A stretch of DNA of 61,931 bases, the filler included, from Sluysia triapertura (taxonomy: Eukaryota), in assembly GCA_046118255.1 (NCBI GenBank). It is 4 parts of 4 records of this genome, joined end to end, with 100 filler letters (N's around TTAATTAATTAA, not from the genome) between each part and the next. Parts side by side here need not be neighbours in the genome. Positions count along the whole stretch, not along the records: positions 32,248 to 48,136 come from JBJNIA010216030.1; 3 more parts are not named here. One strand, given 5' to 3'. Made by a program: the position numbers and the translations under genes. This document shows positions 32,248 through 48,136 of this stretch, piece after piece. The notes beneath the pieces are model-generated. The model worked only from the letters and a program-made list of their open reading frames with translations. It was not told the DNA's origin and did not search any database. The first letter of the stretch is position 1. Each line of letters begins with the position of its first letter.

Positions 32248-32257
32248 AGCATCAAGT

Positions 32258-32267
32258 TGGCGACTCC
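32258..32267 (+). other. Putative LTR-retrotransposon primer-binding site (tRNA-Arg type)
   Basis: TGGCGACTCC shortly after ..CATCA, complementary to the GGAGTCGCCA 3' end of animal tRNA-Arg(UCU); any LTR would lie in the gap. Confidence 0.4.
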
Positions 32268-32639
32268 TGAAGTTATAACTAACAATCATAATGTAAACTC
32301 TAATAAAGTAAAATTTAATTTAATTTTAGATAATGATAATGATTTATTTAAAATCTTTTCAGATAGTAAAACAAGGATAGGTCTGACGGACTCGACTCAT
32401 GCAGAAGTAGACGTCTATATATCAAAATTTAAATTCATCAATGTAATAATAAATGTTAAAGTGTTTCGTATGATCAATATAACTCATAATGAAATTTTAA
32501 ATGTAGAGATAATATTTAATAACAACATAAAGAACACAATAAAAGTTTTAATCAAAATTTTGTTAAAGTTAGAACAATCTATAAATAAAGATCAAAACAT
32601 AAAATATCTTCTAAAAGCAAAAATACCAAAGTTAAAACA

Positions 32640-33260
32640 ATTTAAAATACCATCATTTATTCTTAAAATAGCCATTTCTGTTGAGTGATAAGTCCTGTAA
32701 ACTGAATCATACATTGTAAGCAGTTGATTTTCACTAGGAACTTTGACAATTGTTGTAAAACTGCTTTTTCATTCAATTTTGATAAGAGTGTTATATTTGG
32801 TACGAGTCTGTAATTACTTAAAAGCAATGAATCACCATGTTTCAGATGAGGTAATATAGGATACTTTTTCACTTGAAGGGAATTTTAGACTATATAATGA
32901 ATTATTAATAATTTTCAATAAAATCAGAATAACTTTAGTCAAATTTGAATTATTTTTGATAAGTTTGGTTGGTATTGGGTCAGTAGAACTTGTTTTTGAC
33001 ATTTCTGACATAATTTGTATTAAATCATCCTCACTAATTTTCTTTAATACAAATTCATTTATGTTCTTCTTCTTTTGCATTTCAAATTTAATGTTTGATT
33101 TATTAATGTTATTTCGCATATTTTCAACTTTCGATACAAAAAATTTTAAAAAATCGTTTGACATAATTTTATCATTCTGTTTACCAAATAATTTATTTAA
33201 TAATTTATAAATATCTTTAAAAAAAGCGTACTTTCTTTTCTTGTGTAGTTTTTGACAATA
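32640..33260 (-). mobile_element. L2/CR1-clade LINE reverse transcriptase fragment, frameshifted
   Basis: DPIPTKLIK..LLKIINNSL..FPSS.K / PHLK..LSNYRLVPNITLLSKLNEKAVLQQL / YRTYHSTEMAILRIND across three frames, the N-terminal RT motifs. Confidence 0.9.
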
Positions 33261-33261
33261 T

Positions 33262-33945
33262 TGTTGAGAAACATAGAACTATAAAATCAAGGAATTGATG
33301 AATTAAACATTATAAACATTGTTGAAATTTGAATAATGATATTAACAGCTAAAGAATATCTTAAAGATCCAAAGACCAAATGGAAACTTGAGATGGACTT
33401 GAAAAATCTTTAGAAGCATTAAGGTACATTTGAACTTTAGAACCTTTAGATCATTTAAGATCTTAGTAACCTTTAGGAATCTTGGTACATCGATGAGTAT
33501 TTGAGATTCTTTAGTAATCTTATAAAATGTTTGAAATCATTGAAATAGTTGAGAAATAAAATCATTGTTATTGGTATTAAGAATAAATCTAGTACGGTAA
33601 TAATTAACATGAAGAAGTAGAAAACGGATTCGGAGAGGTGAAGGTGAAAATATCTAGAGCCTCCTGAATGCCTTATATACTACTTTAGGACCTTAATAAA
33701 ACCCCTAAACATAGAATAAAATTAAGTCTAAAAATAGATTAATTAATTAAAATCTTAATTAACATAATTTAGAAAAAGTATGTTTCTGTGAATAACTTAT
33801 GAATGCGGAATGCTATGTTAACTTTGAAACTGTGTATGTATTTGCTTTGAAAAGACCTTTCGATGAGGTATGGTTTGATCGAGTTCATGCAAGGAAAGCC
33901 TTAATATTGAGCAAAATCAAATATTAATTCTTAATTATGCAATGT
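33262..33945 (-). repeat. LTR-like repeat family A copy
   Basis: Long direct similarity to 25631-26375 (e.g. gaatgcggaatgctatgttaa, ctagagcctcctgaatgccttata). Confidence 0.9.
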
Positions 33946-34987
33946 GCAAAGTTAAGCACACAGTAATCTGCCCAAAAGAAGCCAGGAATGACGCAACAAA
34001 AATTAAAATTTGAAAAATAATATTTATAAAATTTCAAATAATTATATTCTATTCTAACTCAAAAACCAAAAACTATAAGATAAATTGGCAGGGAGTCTCC
34101 CAAAATCAAATAAAGTCTATTAATAATAGATGAATTGAACAATAACTGAGCCAAGCAGAAAATGCTACACAGTATTTCATTCCTGTTGGAAATTCTGCAG
34201 TTTGCACATAAAAGTCATAACTTGAATTCAAATTCTCTTCTAGACTCCATGTATATCTCATCATAAATTAATTTACAGCTTAATAAAATTGAGTATTCTC
34301 TTAACCTGTCATAAATGTCTAAGCCAGATCTACGCAAGTATTATCTAATAGTAAAAGCAATTTTTGATATGGATGCAACTACTAGATAAATGTTTTAATA
34401 AATAAATAATGTAATTATTTTTGCATTATAAAATAGCAATGATGTTGAAACATTAAAAATATGATTAAATTATATTATATTATATATTTTCATAATAAAT
34501 GTACTTAATCTTAGCATATTTAACATACTAACGACAAAATAATTATTTTAATTAAATGTTATATTTTAAAATTATAAAATGTTAAATTTCAAAAATTATA
34601 TTTCACTTTATTTATCATTTGTGAAGCCTTTCAAAAAAATCAAAACACAAAGACAAACAAAAGTTGTTTATATTTCTATTGAAATAATTTTATCATTCAA
34701 ATATCACTTGAAGAATTATTTAATATTTTTCAGAATTAGGTGCAATAATCTTGACGTAATTATTTTAAATGAATCCAATAAAATTAATATACATTGGTAA
34801 AAATTGTTATTTTTGTGACATTGATAATAATCATAATAATAATAATAATAACAAATATCACTTTTTGGAATTTTTAAAGGTTTAATTTACTGAAGCACAT
34901 TGGTCTCAAACGATTGTTTTTTATTTTTCAAATTTCAAGGATGCTGTTGTCGCTGCTACTAGATTTATGATGATGATGGTAATGATG

Positions 34988-35032
<45 letters not shown>

Positions 35033-35203
35033 GTAATGAAACAAAAATTGACATTTCTTTGATAATTATTAAATAATCCATACAAGTATCTCTTCATGAA
35101 AATTAAAAAGCGGAATTCAGCAGTAAATAATGAAATATACAATGGACAAATTAAATTATAGAAAATATTCAAATAATTCTAAAATATGTTAGAAACGTGC
35201 ATA

Positions 35204-36531
35204 TTAAAACAAATCGTCCAATTCTAAGATATCTTCATTGTGACAAACATCGATTTCATCATGCACATGATTCACAATATTATCATGATTCGTATCTTCA
35301 TCTTCAAAATCATCATTATCAACATAATCGTCATTGCCATCATCCACGTCAGTGTTGGTCACAGATGCCGATTTGTTTGACCTACCTTCTGCACCACTTA
35401 CATTTGTTTCTTGAGTAAATTCAGTTTCTTCTTCATCCTCACCAGAAATCACAATTTCTTCATAGTCTCGTTCCAACGAAGCTACTTGTTCGCGTGCTTC
35501 AGTAAACTCGCCTTCCTCTAAACCTTCCATAACATACCAATGTATAAAAGCACGTTTACAAAACAAAACATCGAATTTTCTATTCATTTCACCGAATGCT
35601 TGAATGATTGCCGATGTATTGGCTAACATACAAACACTTCGTATGGTTTGGCACATTTCCGATCCTACAACGGACACAGGAGGCTGACAATTGATACTCA
35701 GTTTGAAACCAGTAGGACACCAATCCACAAACTGTATATCGTTGCGACGTTTGATTTCCATAATTGCATCGTTCATTTCTCGCGGACTAACATCTCCGCG
35801 ATATTGTAAACAACAAGCCATATAACGTCCCAAAGTGACATTACATCGTACCATTTGAGAGAACGGCTCGAAAACAGTTCTAGTTATTTCTCTAGTAGTT
35901 AAATCTTGATGTTCTGCGCGACTTTCTGACAAAATCGGCGAAAAATTAACCAAAGGATAATGTACTATTGGATAGGGGACCAGATTAGTAACAATTTGAG
36001 TTAAATCACAGTTTAAATAATTATTAAATCTTAATGACGCGGTAAATGAACTAAAAACTTGAGCAATTAATCGATTTAAATTATTAAATGTCGGATGAGC
36101 TATGTCCAGAGACAATCCGCAAATGTCATATATTGATTCATTATCCATTAGAACAGACACGTCGGTTTGTTCTTTTGAAGCACGCATAGCCAATAAAGTA
36201 TTTAATGGTTCAACAACACTAGTTGATAACTGAGTACTTGGGTAAATTGCAACTTGAAATTTGGAACGTTTTGCGTACTCCACTGTCATCCGATATAGCA
36301 ATAAACTCGCGAACCCGGAACCAGTTCCACCACCGAAACTGTTGATAATCATAAAGCCTTGTAAATTGTCACAAACGTCGGCTAATTTACGAATGCGCTC
36401 TAAAGTAGGCTTGATAACCATTCGACCAATTGTTCCAAAACCACGAGCATAATTATTTGATGCATCATAACAACCTGATATTAATTGATCAGGGTGAAAT
36501 AAATTGCGATACGGTCCGGTACGAATTTCAT
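35204..36531 (-). CDS. Divergent alpha-tubulin, final exon (codon ~76 to stop) with extended acidic tail
   Basis: Acceptor ttacag then (D)EIRTGPYRNLFHPDQLISG..NNYARG, GGGTGSG, VVEP, TNLVPYP, YMACCL.YRGDV, QFVDWCPTGFK, KRAF.HWYV.EG.EEGEF.EARE. Intron at the conserved alpha-tubulin D76 phase-1 position. Upstream exons not found. Confidence 0.95.
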
Positions 36532-36921
36532 CTGTAATTTTTTTGACAATTATTAATCTTTAAAAATTAATAATTTTATTAATATTTACTTACTATTGTA
36601 AATGGCAAATAAGAATAAAAATAATGAAAATTAATATTTTTATAAGCAGACTTAAAATTAACATTGCTAAATAATTAATTATTAGGATATTATATTTATA
36701 ATCTTATATTATGTATGGTTATATTATATACGGTTTCCTCATTTATTATCTATTTCTCGAATATTTATTCTGAACTCGAAATTCACGATATTCTTCCATT
36801 TGTTTTGAAGATAAAACGTTTTTTAAATATAATATTTATTATTATAATATCATATAAAATCGCATAACTAATTCATTTAATTTGGAATGTTTATAAAAAG
36901 AATTTCATGTGTAAAATAAAT

Positions 36922-37057
36922 NNNNNNNNNNNNNNNNNNNNNNNNNNNNNNNNNNNNNNNNNNNNNNNNNNNNNNNNNNNNNNNNNNNNNNNNNNNNNNN
37001 NNNNNNNNNNNNNNNNNNNNNNNNNNNNNNNNNNNNNNNNNNNNNNNNNNNNNNNNN
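36922..37057. other. Assembly gap
   Basis: Run of Ns. Confidence 0.98.
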
Positions 37058-38396
37058 AATTTTATATTTTTATGCACATTCCAAATTAATCACGAAAATT
37101 ACACTAATTTGAAACTAGAACTTATTTAAAAAATTAAAAAAACAAAGGGATGATAAAAATCATTAAAAATAGATACGAGACAATTAAAATAAAGATACAA
37201 TGTATGATAAATTGTAAAAATAATTCATTGTCAATAGAATTTTATATTAATTTATTTTAATAATAATAATGGTAATAATAATAATAAAAATATTTTTTAA
37301 AAAGTTTATTCAGTAGTTGTATTTATTTAAAAATTTAACAATAAATCTATCCTTAGGACTATTTTATTCATTTGTTAATCATAAATTCTACGCTGTGGTA
37401 AAACGAAATTGCAGCAAGTTGAGTGGAATTATATTTCCACCGAATCAAACAGTCATATTAACTGGCAACATTGCAGATTATTACGCCCTAGATAATTATT
37501 ATTATTATTATTGTTATTATTATTGTTATTATTATTATTATTATTAAATTACTTTTCTAATTTTGTCGAAGCGTGACAACCCTTGACATAACGATAAAAA
37601 TTATTATAATTTTGCAATGATTTGACATTATATTGTAAATTTTTGAAACATAAATGGTACACAGAATTTAATAATCTTATTGACTGTTTATTTTGCATAA
37701 ATTTTTATGTCACAAAGACATTTTAATTTCCTTATTGTCGGTATAATTTTAATTCAAAATATTTTATTAAATTAAACGTACAGCAAACAACTCGTGCATA
37801 CATCGAATTTTCTACCAATGCAAAGTCAATTTAGTGAGTCTCAACTATAGAAATAAGGTTGCGGTGACCCAACACTCATTAATCCAAAATTTTATTGCAA
37901 TTGAATCCCACAAAATTAGTAAATATAAATTTAACAAACAATTAACCCTTTAACGAATTTCATCACAACAATTCTATCAAAATATACTCTCTATTCAAAC
38001 CACTTTATTTATTCAAATTTCTCTTTGATTCACCAAATTTTAACATTAAAATGATACCATTCACGATATCCTTCGACTTTCCAGTTCAAAAATGACCACA
38101 TACTTAAATAGTTTAATATTTTACATAATAAAATTTTGTCAAGTATTTTACTACTCCCAGTCATTCCTTCAGTTCCCTTCCACACCTTCGAAAGTTCCAT
38201 TATTAATTTTGTGGTGGCCAACATATTTCCCTAATAATCATTCTCTACAATTCACATTTAAAAATCAACAGAAAGCAATACATTGTACATAAAACCATGC
38301 TCTTATAGTAATTGCTTTTTAAATTTGAATTTAAATTAATTTAACTACATAAAATTGAAAATTAATTTTTATTATAATTAGCTTTATGAAAATTTT

Positions 38397-39723
38397 TTAT
38401 ACATATAGAATTAATATAAAATTATACAAAAAGAATTTTAAATAAGAACATAAAAATTTATTTTTGTAAACATTTAAATTCTGGACTTCGATCCTATGCG
38501 TGAAGGATTTGATATTTATTGTTCTACCTAAAATAAAAATATAATAATTGTTGATACATGTAAAATATAAGTAAGTGTGACTAACATTATACTTGATATT
38601 TAGAATGTTGGAACTCAATTGAATCTGGTTTAACAGCTCGGAAACTCGTTTTATATGGGAATAGTAACTTGATTTGTGTCGTTCATGGAGCCCAAGTTCG
38701 TGAATGGTGTGAACATATCTGCAGAGAGAGCCATATCGTAAACAGATGCCCTTAGCGTCAGTAGTCGATGGACATAAGATAGTTGACTTGATAAGTTTTC
38801 GTTCGTACAACTTATAATACTCTTGCACATAATGTTTACATAGATAGTAATTGTCAACATGTTTATCCTCGATACTATAATTTTTATATTTAACATCAGT
38901 AAAAACATATACATAATTTTTATCTTTATGGGAATTCTTTATATCAAAAGCATAATAATAAAAGTCAGAAATTTTTAATTAAAATTTTTAATTATAAGAC
39001 CCTCAGGTTTATAAAATTTGTCTTGACGATATGTAGAGAAAACATCATTTCCTTGTTGGTTATAGGTTTTATCATTCATGTATTTACTTCTTATAATTTT
39101 CCTAATTTCACGTCCTGCATCTATGTCTTTAACATCGTTAGTTTCATTTTGGTAATTTTGAAAATCTTGCACACAACGTTGTTATCTTTCTCGCTCTAAT
39201 TCGAATTAGACTTAGTTTCGTAATTGTATATTATAAAACCGTTACGATTATCACCATTAACTTTACTTATATAATTACTAAAATTCATAAGTTGGAGATT
39301 AGCTTCTTTGTTGTTACAGAAAAGATTGGTTATAATTCCATCGTTGAATATTACATAATCTCTGCGTTTATAATCATCAATTTTACTTAGATTGTCACTG
39401 AAATTTATAAATTGTACATTAACATCTATATTGTTATAAAACAAATCATCAATCTGAGTTAGGACTTTACTAAAATTTATAAATTGTGTCTTTACATCTT
39501 TATTGTTATAGAACAAATTAGTTATAGCTTCATCTTTGAATATTACATAATCTTTACATTTGTAATCATCAATCTGATTTATAAATTGTATATTTACATC
39601 TTTATTGTTATAGAACAAATTAGTTATAGCTTCCTCGCTGAATATTACACAATCATCAAGATTAGTTAGATCTTTACTAAGAAATATAGTTGGAACATTG
39701 TTATCTTTATTATTGTCGATCAT
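38397..39723 (-). pseudogene. Disrupted ORF with internal repeats and a C-x9-C-x6-C-x3-H zinc finger (copy A)
   Basis: Consecutive frames 39723-39196 (NLFYNNKDV..QFIN..IDDYK..DYVIF repeats), 39172-38975 and ~38975-38397; finger CPSTTDAKGICLRYGSLCRYVH at 38709-38774. Confidence 0.75.
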
Positions 39724-40199
39724 TACCTTGCTGCCAAATTGCTTTGTACTAATAAAATTGAGATGATAAATTGCTGCAAAAACTAATAATAAAACTGCCG
39801 AATTGCTTCGTAATTGTTAATCTCTGCAATTAGTAATAAACATTGAGATCACAAGTAATTGTCAAAAATTTTTAATTGAGTGTATTTTCAAATGCTGCCA
39901 ACTTAATTAATGATAAATTGTCAAATAATAATCACCTTGAGTTTCTGCCTATGAAAATCAATTACTTTTAGTTTATAATAGTAAAAATTTGTGCAAGTGT
40001 TCAATAATAGGCCATCCAACCAGATGTGTTATAAAAGAAAAGAAGTAACACTTATACTGATTGAATGACCAATATAAATACGTAAAAGAGATTAGAAATG
40101 AATTTTAATGAAGTAGCCACTGATAGTGGTAGTTACTGAATAATTTACTAGTTTAATTGAAAAAAATAATAAAATGGTGATTATTATTATTATTATTAT

Positions 40200-40921
40200 T
40201 ACTAAACACATAAAGTTCTTCGAAATACTAAACATGATCTGTCTTTGAAATCTTCACCTTCTAAATATATTGGACTTAAAAATGATGAAGTCTACAGAAC
40301 TGTGAATTTGTGATATCAATGCTTTAAAAAGATTCATACGTGTTTAGTGTAAACTTTAGTTAATTCAGCCTAATGTTCAAGATAAAATAATGTTTCTAGC
40401 TGAATATGTTAACAGATCATGAGTTATTAATATGTTATAAAGGCGCGGTTTGACGTATAAAAGTAGGTAAATTGTAGTCTAACTTTCATATGTTCAGAAG
40501 GTGATTATACACTGTTGAGAATGTGGTTTAAATCGAATTGATAAGGGTGAAAATAAAATATTTTTGGTGAATTTTTGACGTAACTTAATGGTTTTGAATG
40601 CAATTGTGGTTTGGATTGTTTTGAAGATGTTTGTTGGTTAATATAAAATGTGATTGTGATTGAAATGTTATAAGATTGAAAATTTGAAATGTTTTGATAA
40701 AAAAGAGTTTATTTTGGTGAATGTGAAAAGAATTGAAGTGTATGAATGGTTATGAAGGCCTTTGCAAAGTTGTTATGTAGTGTTAAAACGAGTATGGTTT
40801 TAATTGTATTGGATTAAATTGTGAATTTGGAAATGTGAGTTATTGATCTTGGGATGAGTGTTACGGGAATATGGATTGTGACTTTTAATAAAACTATTAA
40901 AGTTACATGTTGGCCACCACA
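40200..40921 (-). repeat. Strand-skewed LTR-like repeat starting TGTGGTGGCCAACAT
   Basis: C/A-rich on the minus strand; inversely similar to 40990-41340; the same start motif occurs at 38210 (+) and, with one change, at ~54766 (-). Confidence 0.65.
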
Positions 40922-40959
40922 CCCATATTTATCTCTGTTACATCCATTAAAAACATCTT

Positions 40960-41400
40960 CACCCGTTAAAATCAACTAAACACATAATCTCATAATATCC
41001 AAACCACAATTACACTCTAACCATTAAAGTACTGTAAAAAATTCATTCAAAATATTTTATTTTTCATTTTTTAATAATTCAAGCACAATCACAATCGAAA
41101 TTAACCAACAGACATTTTCAAAACAATCCAAACATTCTAAATTCACGATCTTGTATCATTTAATCCCAACAGTTTAACATTACTTTCTTTCAAAACAACA
41201 GTGTACATTCATCACTCATTTTAACGTTTACCCTATTCCAAAGTATTTAAGTCATAACCATTTAATAACATCTTCAGTTAGAAACATTTTCCTATTTAGA
41301 ACATTAAAGTGTATTCTAACTTCCACCTAAACATGCATAGTGCCTCAAAATATTTAACACCTAAAAGTATTTATACTTAACATTAGGCGGAAGTATTATT
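40960..41400 (+). repeat. Strand-skewed LTR-like repeat, inverted partner of 40200-40650
   Basis: atccaaaccacaatt..ccattaa..aaaaattca..aaaatattttattt and ttcag.tagaaacatt blocks match the reverse complement of 40340-40640; acagtgtacattca..attccaaagta recurs at ~42993-43042. Confidence 0.7.
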
Positions 41401-41540
41401 AAGACTGTTAAATATATAAGAAAAATTAAAGATACAAGAAAAGATTGTGTTTCCTCTTTACTTTTAACATTTGATATGTCTAGAAAATTAAGATTCATAA
41501 AAGTAAGATCGTGTAAAGAATTACAAGAGTTTATGTAACT

Positions 41541-41541
<1 letters not shown>

Positions 41542-41612
<71 letters not shown>
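41542..41612. repeat. Palindromic microsatellite (AAT)n(ATT)n
   Basis: About 11 AAT units immediately followed by about 12 ATT units. Confidence 0.9.
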
Positions 41613-41616
<4 letters not shown>

Positions 41617-41847
41617 TTTTATCATTATTGTTATTGTTATTTTATTTTAAAAATATCAATATCAAATATGTAATTATAAAGGCAAGTATAGCCTTATTGA
41701 CAACACTAAAGATGATAATATTCTAGTTATTAATGTTAAAGACGATAAGAATAAAATTTTCGAGCATATAATTTTGAAGATCAGTATAACGCGATTGGCA
41801 TTAGTAGAGATAACGATTTACAAAATAACAATCTTGAAGATGACAGT

Positions 41848-42673
41848 GTGGAAGTTATTAATGTCGAAGTCGAGCATTGTGAGTCTAACAATGATAATCT
41901 TAATGACAATAAAGATAACAATGCTGGATATGAGGTTATGCTATCTAAGAGGAAAAAATATATTGATTATCAAGTCAACAACAATGAAGAACACGATGGT
42001 TTATTGCGCTGTTATGGAGATAATTTTTATAAACTGAAACAGAACAAAGTCGATTTTTATAGTATTTATAAAAATAATATACGTCTTTTCGAACTTTATT
42101 ATTATGAATTAATTGTAATTAATTTTCTTAATGATAATAATAATGTTTATTCTATTGATAAAAATAAATCTAAGATTAATGAAAGGTATAACAATGATAA
42201 CAAGTATTTTTAGTTCACTTAATAATTATAAATGTGATGACTCTCGACGTAGAGATAATGAACAAGAGTATCACATGTTCAATAAAGAAAAAATTATTCG
42301 TACAGCTGCTATGTGTCCAGCTCTTACTGAAAACAAAGGTATTTGCTTAATGCGTGGAGTGTTCTGCCGATTCACTCATTCTGTTCACGAAATGAAGATC
42401 AGCAAAGAAGATCAAGCAACTTACAACTTACACTTGCAACGAATTACGGGATTACTGAATAATATTGCAGTTGTTTCTGGCATTTCAGGAGATAATAATT
42501 TAATGGATGACAACGTTAAGGTAAATAATATTTACTTTTATTTATTTTGTGTTAACAATCATCATTATTATTTTTTATTAGTAGGTGAAACATCGAGAAG
42601 AAGTATCATACATAGCAGTCAAATATCAAAAGTAAAATTTTTCAAAAATAAATCTTTATGCTTTTGTTTTTAA
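41848..42673 (+). pseudogene. Disrupted ORF with C-x9-C-x6-C-x3-H zinc finger (copy B)
   Basis: Two overlapping frames; finger CPALTENKGICLMRGVFCRFTH at 42314-42379; homologous to copy A both upstream (YYY..NVY) and downstream (RI..LLN.I, YF.C.NN.Y.F...G, KNK.LC). Confidence 0.78.
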
Positions 42674-45600
42674 TTTTGGTCTAGGGAGGATATGACAATT
42701 ACTTTGGAACTAAAAATTTCGAACGGGGACTTTTTAATAAAAGCTAATCTTAAATTTTATAAATTTAAAAATAAATTAAATTTTAAAAATAACAATAATC
42801 CAATAACATTAAACATAATTAACTTTTCTCAGCAAGTTTAAAATTTAAGCATAATTGTTTAATATTGTAAAGAATATTTTATAATTAAATAAAATAAATT
42901 AACTAAATTAACTCACAATTTTATCAAATATGAAAACATTCATAAATACTTATAACCTTAAACATTTCATAATTCACTTAACATTTCACACCACAGTGTA
43001 CATTCAACTCTATGTTAACCACAGCTTTAGAATTCCAAAGTAAAATAATCATATTTAATTTTAGGTACTCAAACTATTTTACAAAATCAGAAAGAACTTT
43101 GCCTCCAAACGAAGTATATTGTAAAATTTATTTAATGTTAATTAATTTTATTTAATAATAATAACAATAATAAATCAATAAATATACCAAAATCAATTTA
43201 GCCCTCACCATTATTATTAACAAAATCACTAATGTCATTATTGACATTTCATTAATGTAGTCACCTTACACTGACTTTGATTCCTGCCCAATGAAATGTG
43301 AATTGCCTACAGATTTCACTGGAGCAATTTCATTAAAAATACATTTTAATGTGATATAAATATACCTTATTTTATTTAATCTCGGATTCTTACATTTTGA
43401 ATTTAACATAATATTTTCTTTTTAATGGCGAATGACATCAACTAGATTAATGACACTACAAACGAATCCTCTTAGTTTTCAATCGTCAGAATCAGTTTAA
43501 AAATGAAGCTGTTATAGTTTTAAACAAGAAATATTAATTTTTGTTCTAATAATGCGAGAATCAACTAATTATCTTAATAATTATCCTTAATTTGTGATTG
43601 ATAAAACTTCTTCATTTTATAACTAATATTAATATAACTCATCATATTAATACAAAAACAGAGCAACTGTTACATTATAATTCATTGAATTCAATCAAAT
43701 TTATGAATCAAATACAGCTCAACTTAAATTTGATAGTTGTTGAAATGTTTGATCTCATTCTTATTCAAAATGGAAAAAATAGTACATAAAATTCTCACAA
43801 CTCTGATTCAAATTATTCAGATTATTTCTTTACAATTAAGAATGTTACAGGTATTGGTATTAATGATATTTGTGGAAAAAATTTTTGATTTAAATGAAGA
43901 AGTTCTCTATAGAAGTTTCATTTATCATATCCTTATTAATTTTAAAAGCACAATCGATGATAAATTTAGTATTTTCAATTATAAAGATCCGATACCTAAA
44001 AATAAACTAATAGAAGTTGAAAATGATTTAAAGCTGAACTTAGTTAACAAAGTAAAAGCACAAAGTCTAAATGATTAATTTGTACTACTCATAAAACACA
44101 TTGATAAACCTGAATGAACCAATCGAAGATAACAATTCTGTTACGAAATATAATGATTTGTCATAATGATCTAAAACAGTTTCAGTTAAGCAAATATAAT
44201 TCAATCTCGGTCAAGCCAAAACATACCTCAAAAGTAAAATAGTTGTTAATAATTAAAAAAATTAATGAGGTTTAGTAAAGATTTCTAAAGATTTCTGTGA
44301 GTAGTATATATTAGTTTTATTTTATATTAAAATCTATCTAATAGGTTTCTTTATCACTTTGTCCAATTCTCTTACTATTTGATACTCTACGTTTTTTTGA
44401 TGCTGCGATAAGTTACTTTAATATTCTATTTTGCTAATTAGAGGGTTACTCATAAAATGAATTTTCGTAAGTTTTCGTTTTTTAAAATGCGAGAATTTTT
44501 GCTTAACTTTGTAAGTTTAAATATTATATTGTGAGTCCTCTGTGATGTTGGGCATATGCAATTATGGGCCAACTCATAGGTGTCAGCGAAAAGTGCAATG
44601 TGCATGTTTTATTGGAGGTCAATAAGAAAATAAATTTTTTGCTTGATAACTGATCCGCTGTTTCGCGAGTTTAGTTTTTATTATATTTTAAATAAGATCT
44701 GAAAGCAAGATTTTACATTACTAAAAATATCTTTAATTTACTATGTTGAATATTTAAATTAAATTTATAATTATATAAATCAAGTTCACATAAGTAACGA
44801 TAATTATTATTTAAAATAATAATAATAGTAGTTGAAGTTGTTTGAAAATTTATTTTATGGCTAATAAAGTTTACTAATGGTTACTAAAATGGATATTAAG
44901 TTTAAATTTATTCTTTTAATTAAAATAAGCAAAACCTACAATCAATATCAACTAACGAATTCATTAAAATATTTGTCACGGATAAACAATAAAAGTTAAT
45001 GAATCCTGTAATAAATTTTTCCACGAATGAATGCGTAACAAATCCGGTTATAATATAATAATCTATAATATAAATATAATATAGATATTTTGTTTTGAAA
45101 ATTTTAAAATCAATATTTGTTAAAGTTTACAACGTCGGTGCTTTTGTTAAATTGATCTGTCTGTGTGCATAAATGTATGAAAAGTTCTAATTCTAAAAAT
45201 AACAGTAATAATACTTTAATTTTTTAATTATATTAGTATCAATAATAATATTAATAATAATATTTTCGCAATTAATAATAATAATATCAATAATAATAAT
45301 ATATTCGCAAAAGTACAACTATTTAAAATTAATAATTTTATTATTTTCAAATCACTTAAAATTAAATTAATATTTTATTACATTTTTAACATAACATTTT
45401 ACACATAATTACAACAAATAATATTTTACCATTTTCATTTCTGGTTGTTTAAAGCTACCAATAAAATATAAATATAAAATATAAATATATTTTATTCATA
45501 CTAATATTGAGACATTAATATTATTAAATTTTTGTTTCTAGCTGTTATTTATTATTTACTTGTTTTATTAACATTGCTAAAATTTAGTTGAGTTTGATTT

Positions 45601-48051
45601 TAATCTACGTGAGTTCCTTATGACATTAGACTTACTCAAAAAATGTCAGAAATCTCTCAAAAGGTCTACTGGTATAACGTCAGTAATTCAAGTTTTATCT
45701 TACTGCAATTACAGGTTAAAAATGTGTATTTTACTTAAGATCCCAATTAAACAGGATCTTCAAAAGAGAATTTTAATATTAAATCGACAAAAAACGACTA
45801 ATTTGGGGGTAAATTTGAAACCATATAATTTAATATTATATACGAACTGTGATAAAATGATGTAAAGAACAGTAATAAGTTATATTTAAAAAAAATCAAT
45901 ACAAAAAGTTTAATGTATATATTTAATATGCATATAAATGTGAATTTTGCAAAATTAAAAACTGACAGTAATTAATTTTTTGTCTAATCTGATTTTAGAA
46001 GAATTTTACATCAATCTTCGTAAACGGTTGAAAATAAAAAGAAATTTAATAAAACTTTGAGTAGTATTTTACACTAAATAAAATTTGTTAGACCTCTAAT
46101 ATATTATCTAACGGATTATTCTGCTAAAATTCCTTATTCCAAAAGATAGATCGTTTGATGATGAATGTATATAATATTTTGAATTGAACTTTTAATCTTA
46201 ATTTAATTTCATTTGCGTTTTTTCTATTGTGCGTATGAGAAAATGTTTTGGCTTTATATATTTATTTTGACACAAGTTCATTTTATAAATTTATTATTTA
46301 TCAAGAAATTATTTAAGAGAAAATTTTTTAATTATTTAATATTTAATTATATTATTTAAATTTTTTCAAAATAATCCGCATTTAAATCTGTTTTATAAAT
46401 TTAAAATTAAATCTATTAATGTTACACAAATAAATTGATAAATAAATTTACACTTAAAATAATACACTAAAATAGATTATTATAAATGTTACACAAAATT
46501 ATATGATTAATGTTACTCTCTAAAAATAAATTATTGATTATTATATTATAATATTGACACTATTAATGTTACACACATAAAATAATATTTGACATAATAT
46601 TGACAGTTATCGAACATTCCGTGAACAAATTACTTTTTATATTTTGTGCTTTTAAATTATTTATGATTTGTCGCATCTTTTATAATCATATTTAATTTTA
46701 TTGTATATTTTTGGGAATTTTTGTATAAGTTTTTGCTTTATGATTAGCTAATAGAGATATTGAAGTATTTATTACTATTTCCATTTTTAACACTAGAGAC
46801 GAATTAAAATTATAACTTCACAGATAAAGATAATTTATGTTAAGTTTTAAGTCATTTGATATTGTGAAAGTTTAAATATGGTTATAATGTTAAATATTAT
46901 TCCAACAATTATTTAACTTTACGTAACGAAGCAAAAGTAATTTAAATTTTTGGTATATGTTTAGATTTTTATAATTAATAAACACAAATTAACTTTAAAA
47001 ATATATTTTGTTAATGTTAATTTTAAGGTAATAACATAAAATTTATTAAAATATAATAGTATAATGTCAATAAAATCCATTTTATATTGGAAAATAATAA
47101 TAATATATTAATTTATATTCCGCTCATATCTATTACGTATGTACTCAAAAGCGCTTAAGGTAAATCATTCACCATAATATTTCTGAAACAGAAAGAATTT
47201 TGCCTTTTTTCTTATATATTTCATAATCTTCCAGCAATTTGACATTATCTGGTAACTGGTTTTATATTTTTGAGACATAAACAGTATACAACCTATCACC
47301 TAGCTTGTTATCATTGTGAATTCTATATAAATGTGAATATTCTCTGTAAATCGTTAATCTAACATGAAACAGTCAATTATGTGCAACCATTCTGAAATCA
47401 TGTTCTTCACTTCAATCCAATTCGATTGATCTATTTTAAAAGATAATTTTAATAAATTAATTCCAACCGATGACGTAAATAATGAAATACCATTGATAGG
47501 TATTATTTAAAAGCGAAGTCTTTGGAAAAATATCATTTTGTAAAATTGAAATTAGTGACACATTTTTAAAAATCTTTAAAATCTTCTTGCAATAAAATAG
47601 CCTTTTGTTTCATCTGACTTTATTGAGATATTAAAATACTTTAGTTTTAGTTCTTTAGTTTCAAATATAACCAGTTATTTAGACTTTTAAAATATTTGTT
47701 GCGAAAACATTTTAAATTATGATAAATCTATATAAATTAATTAATTATTATTTTTGGTATTCTTAATTTTATAATTTTAAATTAAAATAAGTGTATATAT
47801 TGAATATTTATTGCAATTCAATTATAAATTTTTGCGTGATATTGATAAAACTTTGTTAAAGCTTAAATCTTGTTTCCAGTTTTTGTAATTCAATTACGTT
47901 TTATGATACTAATAAATTTTATTAAAATTTAATACCTTGTTGAGATCTTTTTCGGATAGTTGAGAAATAGTAACGATTAAAAAAACTTAGATTAAAAAAA
48001 TTTTGATTATCGACTCAAAAGTCAAATTCATAAATAAGATATTGAATAAAG

Positions 48052-48106
<55 letters not shown>

Positions 48107-48136
48107 GAAGAAACCTCATAAAGAAAAAACGATGCA

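Follow-up and report, generated by a model that had tools for sequence, protein, structure and literature searches.

A divergent alpha-tubulin exon of Sluysia triapertura with glutamine at the catalytic Glu254 position, and the clade that shares this replacement

The stretch of DNA analysed here, which we call the window, comprises 61,931 nucleotides of the Sluysia triapertura assembly GCA_046118255.1. On the minus strand of the part that stems from JBJNIA010216030.1 (positions 32248-48136) it carries the terminal coding exon of a divergent alpha-tubulin. The exon starts with the last two bases of the codon for D76 and continues to the C-terminus, coding for 442 residues. Its reading frame extends without interruption from 36541 to the TAA stop codon at 35204-35206, a total of 445 codons. 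At the local base composition stop codons are expected every 14 codons, and the chance of an open frame of this length is 3e-15. The region is very AT-rich, with 13-30% G+C outside genes and 35-39% G+C over positions 35250-36250. At the exon start the minus strand reads ..aaaaaaattacag|ATGAAATTCGT.., and the AG at 36533-36532 sets the first base of the exon at 36531. The features of the locus are collected in Table 1.

Table 1. Features of the alpha-tubulin locus; positions count along the whole window.
Feature	Position	Strand	Basis
Terminal coding exon of a divergent alpha-tubulin	35204-36531	-	Translation; Pfam; 57% identity to solved alpha-tubulins
Acidic C-terminal tail, 82 residues after ..DYEEI	35207-35452	-	Translation; ends with LELDDLF
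T7 loop and helix H8 (residues 244-260), FNNYLNCD LTQIVTNLV	35978-36028	-	Segment comparison; alignment with PDB chains
Codon CAA (Gln) at the catalytic Glu254 position	35996-35998	-	Translation; phmmer alignment; contig of the sequencing run
Tubulin signature GGGTGSG (T4 loop), intact	36314-36334	-	Sequence
3' splice acceptor AG	36532-36533	-	Minus-strand sequence ..aaaaaaattacag|AT GAA ATT..; phase 1, splits the codon for D76
Assembly gap, 136 N	36922-37057		N run; 390 bp upstream of the exon

Both Pfam tubulin domains score above their gathering cut-offs, Tubulin (PF00091) with 114.9 bits (E 7e-33) and Tubulin_C (PF03953) with 127.7 bits (E 4e-37). The PF00091 match covers only profile positions 60-189 since the exon begins only at residue 76. 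Aligned with solved alpha-tubulins from their residue 74 onwards, the protein is about 57% identical to them (phmmer, best E 6e-152), and the best 60 PDB matches are all alpha chains. As hundreds of chains of known structure match at this identity, the fold is settled, and so is the place of residue 254. N-site contacts that fall within the exon are kept (D98, N101, GGGTGSG, E183, N206 and N228), and two replacements, A100S and Y185L, are found close to N-site residues. The class-defining catalytic Glu254 was tested for and is absent, with Gln in its place, while D251 is present. Judged by its sequence, the gene is thus an alpha-tubulin by descent which is devoid of the catalytic residue of its class.

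With canonical TUBA1B (PDB 3j8x chain A) the protein shares the fold domains, the GGGTGSG signature, the N-site residues within the exon, the alpha-specific S9-S10 insert, the intron at codon 76 and an aromatic C-terminal residue. The two differ in E254Q, L318Q, M398L, K96C and F138I, among other changes, and core identity is 58%. They also differ in the C-terminal tail, which exceeds the TUBA1B-type tail by about 66 residues (about 82 versus about 16). The last residues of the tail are LELDDLF, compared to LDFDDLF in the nearest relative (P0030), and the remainder of the 82 residues is only 28% identical to that relative.

At codon 254 the plus strand has TTG; the minus strand accordingly gives CAA, which lies in frame within ...SLRFNNYLNCDLTQIVTNLVPYP..., and the phmmer alignment with solved alpha-tubulins sets this Gln opposite E254. 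Next to it, the T7 loop and helix H8 differ from the canonical sequence by D245N, G246N, A247Y, V250C, F255I and Q256V, while N249 and D251 are retained. According to the segment comparison, none of the neighbouring T7/H8 positions carries an acidic residue in the window copy. The sequence-only reading had claimed a CAA codon for Gln at position 254, altered neighbours in the T7 loop and an intact ORF. All three claims are borne out, and the peptide that it gave is matched exactly by our translation.

The concern, also raised there, that reads may have GAA at this codon is answered by a Logan contig of 1967 bases with a word depth of 18. Over positions 35045-36921 it shows neither a differing letter nor a gap, codon 254 included, and it extends 58 letters beyond 36921. 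The run from which this contig comes is the only public run with the locus and is probably the sample behind the genome assembly; an assembly slip is therefore ruled out, yet the contig lends no independent biological support. That GAA is the true codon, with Gln stemming from a mistake in sequencing or assembly or from a rare allele, has nothing specific in its favour other than that the locus is found in a single DNA run. This is barely credible, given a run contig that is identical across the exon at this depth, Gln in every relative of the clade described below, and CAA wherever DNA of these relatives is available. Sequencing error was rejected on these grounds, and so was a mutation private to the window gene, as Gln254 is found in all ten members of the clade.

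Microsatellites are found on either side of the tubulin exon, (TAA)19 at 34980-35037 and (ATT)17 at 37495-37546, and the contigs of the run break at the former.

Several other ORFs are found in the vicinity. Two of them, at 38397-38828 on the minus strand and at 42131-42673 on the plus strand, are diverged paralogs in inverted orientation (34% identity over 134 aa, E 9e-30). Both match the UNK-like CCCH zinc finger PF25427 below threshold, scoring 26 and 21 bits where the cut-off is 31. Between these two lies an ORF of 175 aa (39196-39723, minus strand) in which a unit of about 35 residues recurs throughout (..ITNLFYNNKDVN.QFINF..). This ORF has no Pfam match, and a tandem-repeat finder reported nothing for it at the DNA level. 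On the other side of the exon, two short ORFs occupy 32663-33164 on the minus strand. One of these contains ..SNYRLVPNITLLSKLNEKAVLQQL.. and gives the impression of a non-LTR reverse transcriptase fragment; it has no significant Pfam match.

The exon for residues 1-75, which would carry the T1 loop (GQAG), the H1-S2 loop and K40, was not found in the readable part of 32248-48136. This region was searched by a motif scan and by tblastn with the canonical N-terminus and five N-termini from the clade, and tblastn gave no match for residues 1-75 better than E 0.27. The sole nearby place where this exon could lie is the assembly gap upstream of the acceptor. As residues 1-75 are not encoded in readable sequence, the window copy may be incomplete. 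A search of public runs for the locus returned one DNA-type run which contains the tubulin locus, and no RNA run.

The acceptor has the same place and phase as an intron at codon 76 in related genes. In two of these (L003 and L005), an upstream exon of the type ..GQAG..DLEPTV(L/I) precedes an intron that is short (about 48 nt in L003) and splits the codon for D76 as G|AT. The sequence of L003 is CTC G|gt..48 nt..ag|AT GAA, and L001 reads ttttgtag|ATGAAGTT. Three copies (L001, L004 and L006) break off at this intron point. Where N-termini of the clade are present, they depart from the canonical MREC, with MKEI, M..PEII and MQENPKEI being found instead.

Protein relatives were collected by word-based searches, a profile search and, later, a region-limited search; 204 proteins were fetched and scanned for the T7/H8 motif. 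The word-based searches retrieved mostly canonical alpha-tubulins, at 55-58% identity to the window protein, together with the closer relatives P0030 (65%), P0078, P0086, P0087 and P0085. A profile of these closer relatives added P0123 (Q7Z1L8 from Schmidtea polychroa), P0129 (A7M6D9 from Dugesia ryukyuensis) and P0124, and the region-limited search contributed P0138. The protein collection does not contain the window gene as such, and the nearest relative in it is 65% identical. Nine database proteins share Gln254 with the window sequence, while Glu is found in all 212 other alpha-tubulin motifs that were fetched. The only named proteins among the nine are the two from planarian flatworms, Q7Z1L8 and A7M6D9, which would suggest a flatworm origin. 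The notion of a single odd gene, as entertained in the sequence-only reading, has thus to be abandoned in favour of a family with nine Gln254 relatives already deposited, these planarian proteins among them.

In a maximum-likelihood tree computed without columns 244-258, the ten Gln254 sequences form one clade with a support of 100/100 and a stem of 0.46 changes per site. With the same columns removed, this clade was recovered in 100% of 200 bootstrap trees, and a quick tree also gave a value of 100. The window sequence groups with L001/P0030 (97/87) and these then join with P0085 (100/100), while the two planarian proteins represent a sister subgroup to that of the window. In this tree, which was built without beta- or gamma-tubulin sequences, the Gln254 clade is nested inside animal and fungal alpha-tubulins. 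We regard it as virtually certain that the window contains an exon of an alpha-tubulin from this clade.

We surveyed fixed changes at those positions that are invariant in 25 canonical sequences. Identical replacements in all ten clade members are E254Q, L318Q and M398L. Positions which are altered in all ten are K96, F138, F202, V235, G246, V250, F255, C295 and D367. The window sequence has the derived residues Q254, Q318 and L398 and a residue other than Phe at position 138 (I138). All four DNA copies (window, L001, L002 and L003) use CAA for Gln254. Long C-terminal tails are found in every clade member for which the C-terminus is complete.

The planarian proteins Q7Z1L8 (AAP47197) and A7M6D9 (BAF75867), which belong to the same clade (100/100), have in common with the window protein Gln254, Q318, L398, 'IINS/LISS' instead of 'VFHS', EIKRR in helix H10 and an extended, non-canonical C-terminal tail. 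Their identity to the window protein amounts to only 51%, and they belong to a sister subgroup. Their tails are unrelated in sequence to that of the window and are devoid of the DDLF end. Another difference concerns D251, which is kept in the window but has been lost from Q7Z1L8 (LNANLSQ).

Additional copies of such genes were encountered in nucleotide data. Logan run SRR33002330 contains four different Gln254 genes, three of them with 38-40% G+C (L001, L003 and L004) and one with 57% G+C (L005). The occurrence of four genes with two base compositions in this run suggests that there are several paralogs per genome and that more than one organism was sampled. The contig L002 (ENA ERZ27235085, positions 203-2236) encodes P0085; it has no intron at codon 76 and a product of 677 aa, and may be either transcript-derived or a more derived paralog. 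The C-terminal extension of P0085 is long, non-acidic and rich in Ser/Lys, and 12 sites that are conserved elsewhere carry changes private to this protein. A 701 aa protein from Fasciola gigantica (P0121) is annotated as a fusion of a partial canonical alpha-tubulin with a very divergent second alpha-tubulin. The second half of this protein has a branch of 0.97, retains Glu254 (..LNMDIAEFQTNLIPYP) and falls outside the Gln254 clade.

Over the core of the protein, dN between the window and L001 is 0.18, and synonymous sites are saturated. NG86 leaves the core dN/dS undefined and maximum-likelihood values are unstable, so the reading is limited to dN being much lower than dS. The dN/dS comparison envisaged by the sequence-only reading gives a direction, with dN far below dS, and, due to saturation, no ratio. 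For the tail, dN/dS is about 0.45 (NG86). According to these alignments the Gln254 clade is under purifying selection, with Gln being invariant.

Three substitutions (E97Y, Y185L and I265V) are private to the window copy and affect sites which are conserved in all other sequences. In addition, ARGHYTIG is changed to ARGFGTIG (H107/Y108 to F/G) beside the T3 loop of the N-site. The changes at E97, Y185, I265 and H107/Y108 could affect folding or GTP binding. The other clade members have between 0 and 12 such private changes each, and the window copy is no outlier in this respect. Its branch is about twice that of its nearest relative (0.28 versus 0.12). A relative-rate test is significant for the window with P0085 as outgroup (41 versus 18) and not significant with P0087 or with a canonical sequence.

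These data bear on the question of whether the window copy might be truncated, or a recently dead paralog that has lost its 5' exon or promoter, so that the locus would yield no protein, in a clade that is otherwise functional. Such a loss would fit the private changes at universally conserved sites and the longer branch, as well as the lack of residues 1-75 in 32248-48136 outside the gap and of an RNA run in the run search. It would also fit the distances, since the intron is only about 48 nt in L003/L005 while the window has at least 390 bp between exon and gap. We nevertheless consider it unlikely that the copy is dead. A frame of 445 codons is open in AT-rich DNA against a chance of 3e-15, the acceptor is intact at its conserved place, dN is far below the saturated dS, and the ..DDLF motif at the C-terminus has been retained. 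Furthermore, the rate difference is not significant with two of three outgroups, and the assembly gap is located exactly where the 5' exon could be.

The T7 loop and helix H8 of alpha-tubulin complete the exchangeable GTP site in the beta subunit of the next dimer. Within this site E254 is the catalytic base, which deprotonates the attacking water (QM/MM calculations, PMC10319017). Microtubules from human alphaE254Q (TUBA1B) contain GTP throughout the lattice and do not undergo catastrophes; nucleation is increased, growth is faster and EB3 is bound along the whole lattice (PMC11893814). In human E254D tubulin, hydrolysis is only slowed, as cited in PMC10319017.

In a microtubule, the T7-loop/H8 face of a canonical alpha subunit places Glu254 in the GTP site of the beta-tubulin below and triggers hydrolysis. 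A subunit with Gln254 would be expected to fold, to bind its own structural GTP and to polymerise, while the GTP in the adjacent beta subunit would not be cleaved. Microtubules that are rich in this isotype would then remain in the GTP state and resist catastrophe. That a single residue, isosteric with Glu and without its function as a base, has been kept with no drift argues that position 254 is still occupied and still matters. Retention of Gln254 across the clade would thus mean that the subunits enter the lattice and hold the neighbouring GTP uncleaved.

It could be argued that hydrolysis is retained or slowed, with co-varying residues, D251 or a co-evolved beta-tubulin providing another general base; the clade would then represent an isotype whose GTPase activation is tuned and not abolished. 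D251 is indeed kept in eight of the ten clade members and N249 in nine, many coordinated changes surround the site (G246N/S, V250x, F255L/I, Q256V), and the slowed hydrolysis cited for human E254D would point in the same direction. This explanation seems quite improbable to us, as E254Q alone removes detectable lattice hydrolysis in human tubulin (PMC11893814), two clade members (P0123 and P0138) have Asn instead of D251, and the window has no acidic residue at the neighbouring T7/H8 positions.

The comparison of segments shows that the signature and the N-site are near-canonical, while the interdimer face (T7, H8, H10 and H11) is shifted and still fairly conserved within the clade. This combination suggests co-evolution with a partner surface. 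Mean column conservation is 0.90 among canonical sequences and 0.72 within the Gln254 clade. Human TUBA1B has been engineered to be hydrolysis-deficient by E254Q and also by E254A and E254N; the E254Q form, which gives stable GTP microtubules, has the identical replacement of the catalytic residue. It is a laboratory point mutant that is otherwise canonical, whereas the window protein differs at about 42% of the core positions, has an altered T7/H8/H10 face and carries a tail of about 82 rather than about 16 residues. Because its interdimer face is unlike the canonical one, the behaviour of the window protein is not simply transferable from that of the human point mutant.

The same divergence could indicate an alpha-tubulin that does not polymerise or acts at ends, where it would cap, nucleate or sequester or contribute to a structure other than microtubules, with Gln254 as a relic of a need for catalysis that has been lost. 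Besides the interdimer face, the M-loop differs from the canonical sequence, R264 of PYPRIH is replaced in the subgroup of the window (I in the window, V in L001, I in P0085), and the long tail could obstruct contacts in the lattice or serve to attract partners. A relic would be expected to drift, but Gln has been kept, with CAA in four DNA copies, along branches that measure 0.1-0.7 changes per site. Within the clade, the lateral and longitudinal elements have been conserved (mean 0.72), and the human E254Q mutant polymerises well. For these reasons we hold this alternative to be improbable.

Among the readings considered, we favour, with fair confidence, that the window gene belongs to an old and conserved clade in which Glu254 was replaced by Gln and Gln was then kept, and that it encodes a natural hydrolysis-deficient isotype. 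The shared E254Q probably marks a family which builds microtubules unable to hydrolyse GTP; the loss of hydrolysis and the stability of the polymers are predicted by analogy with human alphaE254Q. A hydrolysis-deficient isotype had already been proposed from the sequence. This proposal has gained from the fixed Gln254 clade, from purifying selection and from the human mutant (PMC11893814), and its alternative, a paralog that does not polymerise, is less probable.

A comparable case has been described in apicomplexans. The alpha3-tubulin of Toxoplasma gondii and its coccidian homologs do not have the canonical D251 and E254 (T and H/Q are found instead); they also have an altered N-terminal MREI motif and an unusually long C-terminal tail, of 48 residues in Toxoplasma alpha3, and little or no GTPase-activating function has been predicted for them (PMC10056924). 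As alpha3 has a separate apicomplexan origin, its likeness to the window clade is convergent. Unlike alpha3, the window protein has kept D251, and its clade is uniformly Gln254 and nested among animal alpha-tubulins. The parallel suggests a joint change of three features, namely the catalytic residue, the length of the tail and the autoregulation motif.

While the window gene is new, its kind is already represented by deposited sequences. The planarian Gln254 sequences have been public since 2003-2007, and we found no paper in the searchable literature which links E254 with flatworm tubulins. A fixed E254Q in an animal clade may thus have gone unappreciated. We see an even chance that an animal lineage, probably flatworms, has long kept a multi-paralog family of GTPase-dead alphaE254Q tubulins, with GTP-locked microtubules in its cells, in convergence with Toxoplasma alpha3.

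Removing Glu254 from alpha-tubulin is the standard laboratory route to non-hydrolysing microtubules, which serve as models of the stabilising GTP cap. If the above is true, the family would parallel, in nature, the engineered E254Q tubulin that serves today as a GTP-cap mimic, and cells would use lattices that are permanently in the GTP state for some of their structures. It would provide a native protein with co-evolved neighbours and a partner beta-tubulin, in which the state of the lattice, EB binding and stability could be studied free of mutation artefacts. The convergence with Toxoplasma alpha3 would then lie in the pairing of a lost catalytic residue with a long C-terminal tail and a modified autoregulation motif at the N-terminus. 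As human E254Q tubulin has been characterised, the function of a fixed E254Q is now directly testable.

Q7Z1L8 of Schmidtea polychroa is reportedly the 'divergent alpha-tubulin' of Simoncelli et al. (2003) and is said to be expressed in testis, in the male germ line. The planarian testis-marker papers that were consulted give no description of this tubulin. Flatworm sperm have long-lived cortical and axonemal microtubules, which would fit expression of such a tubulin in male germ-line cells. Gln254 tubulin may perhaps have a role in sperm. For flatworm biology, the family, if it is what we propose, would be a sign of a specialised cytoskeleton, which might be the one found in sperm.
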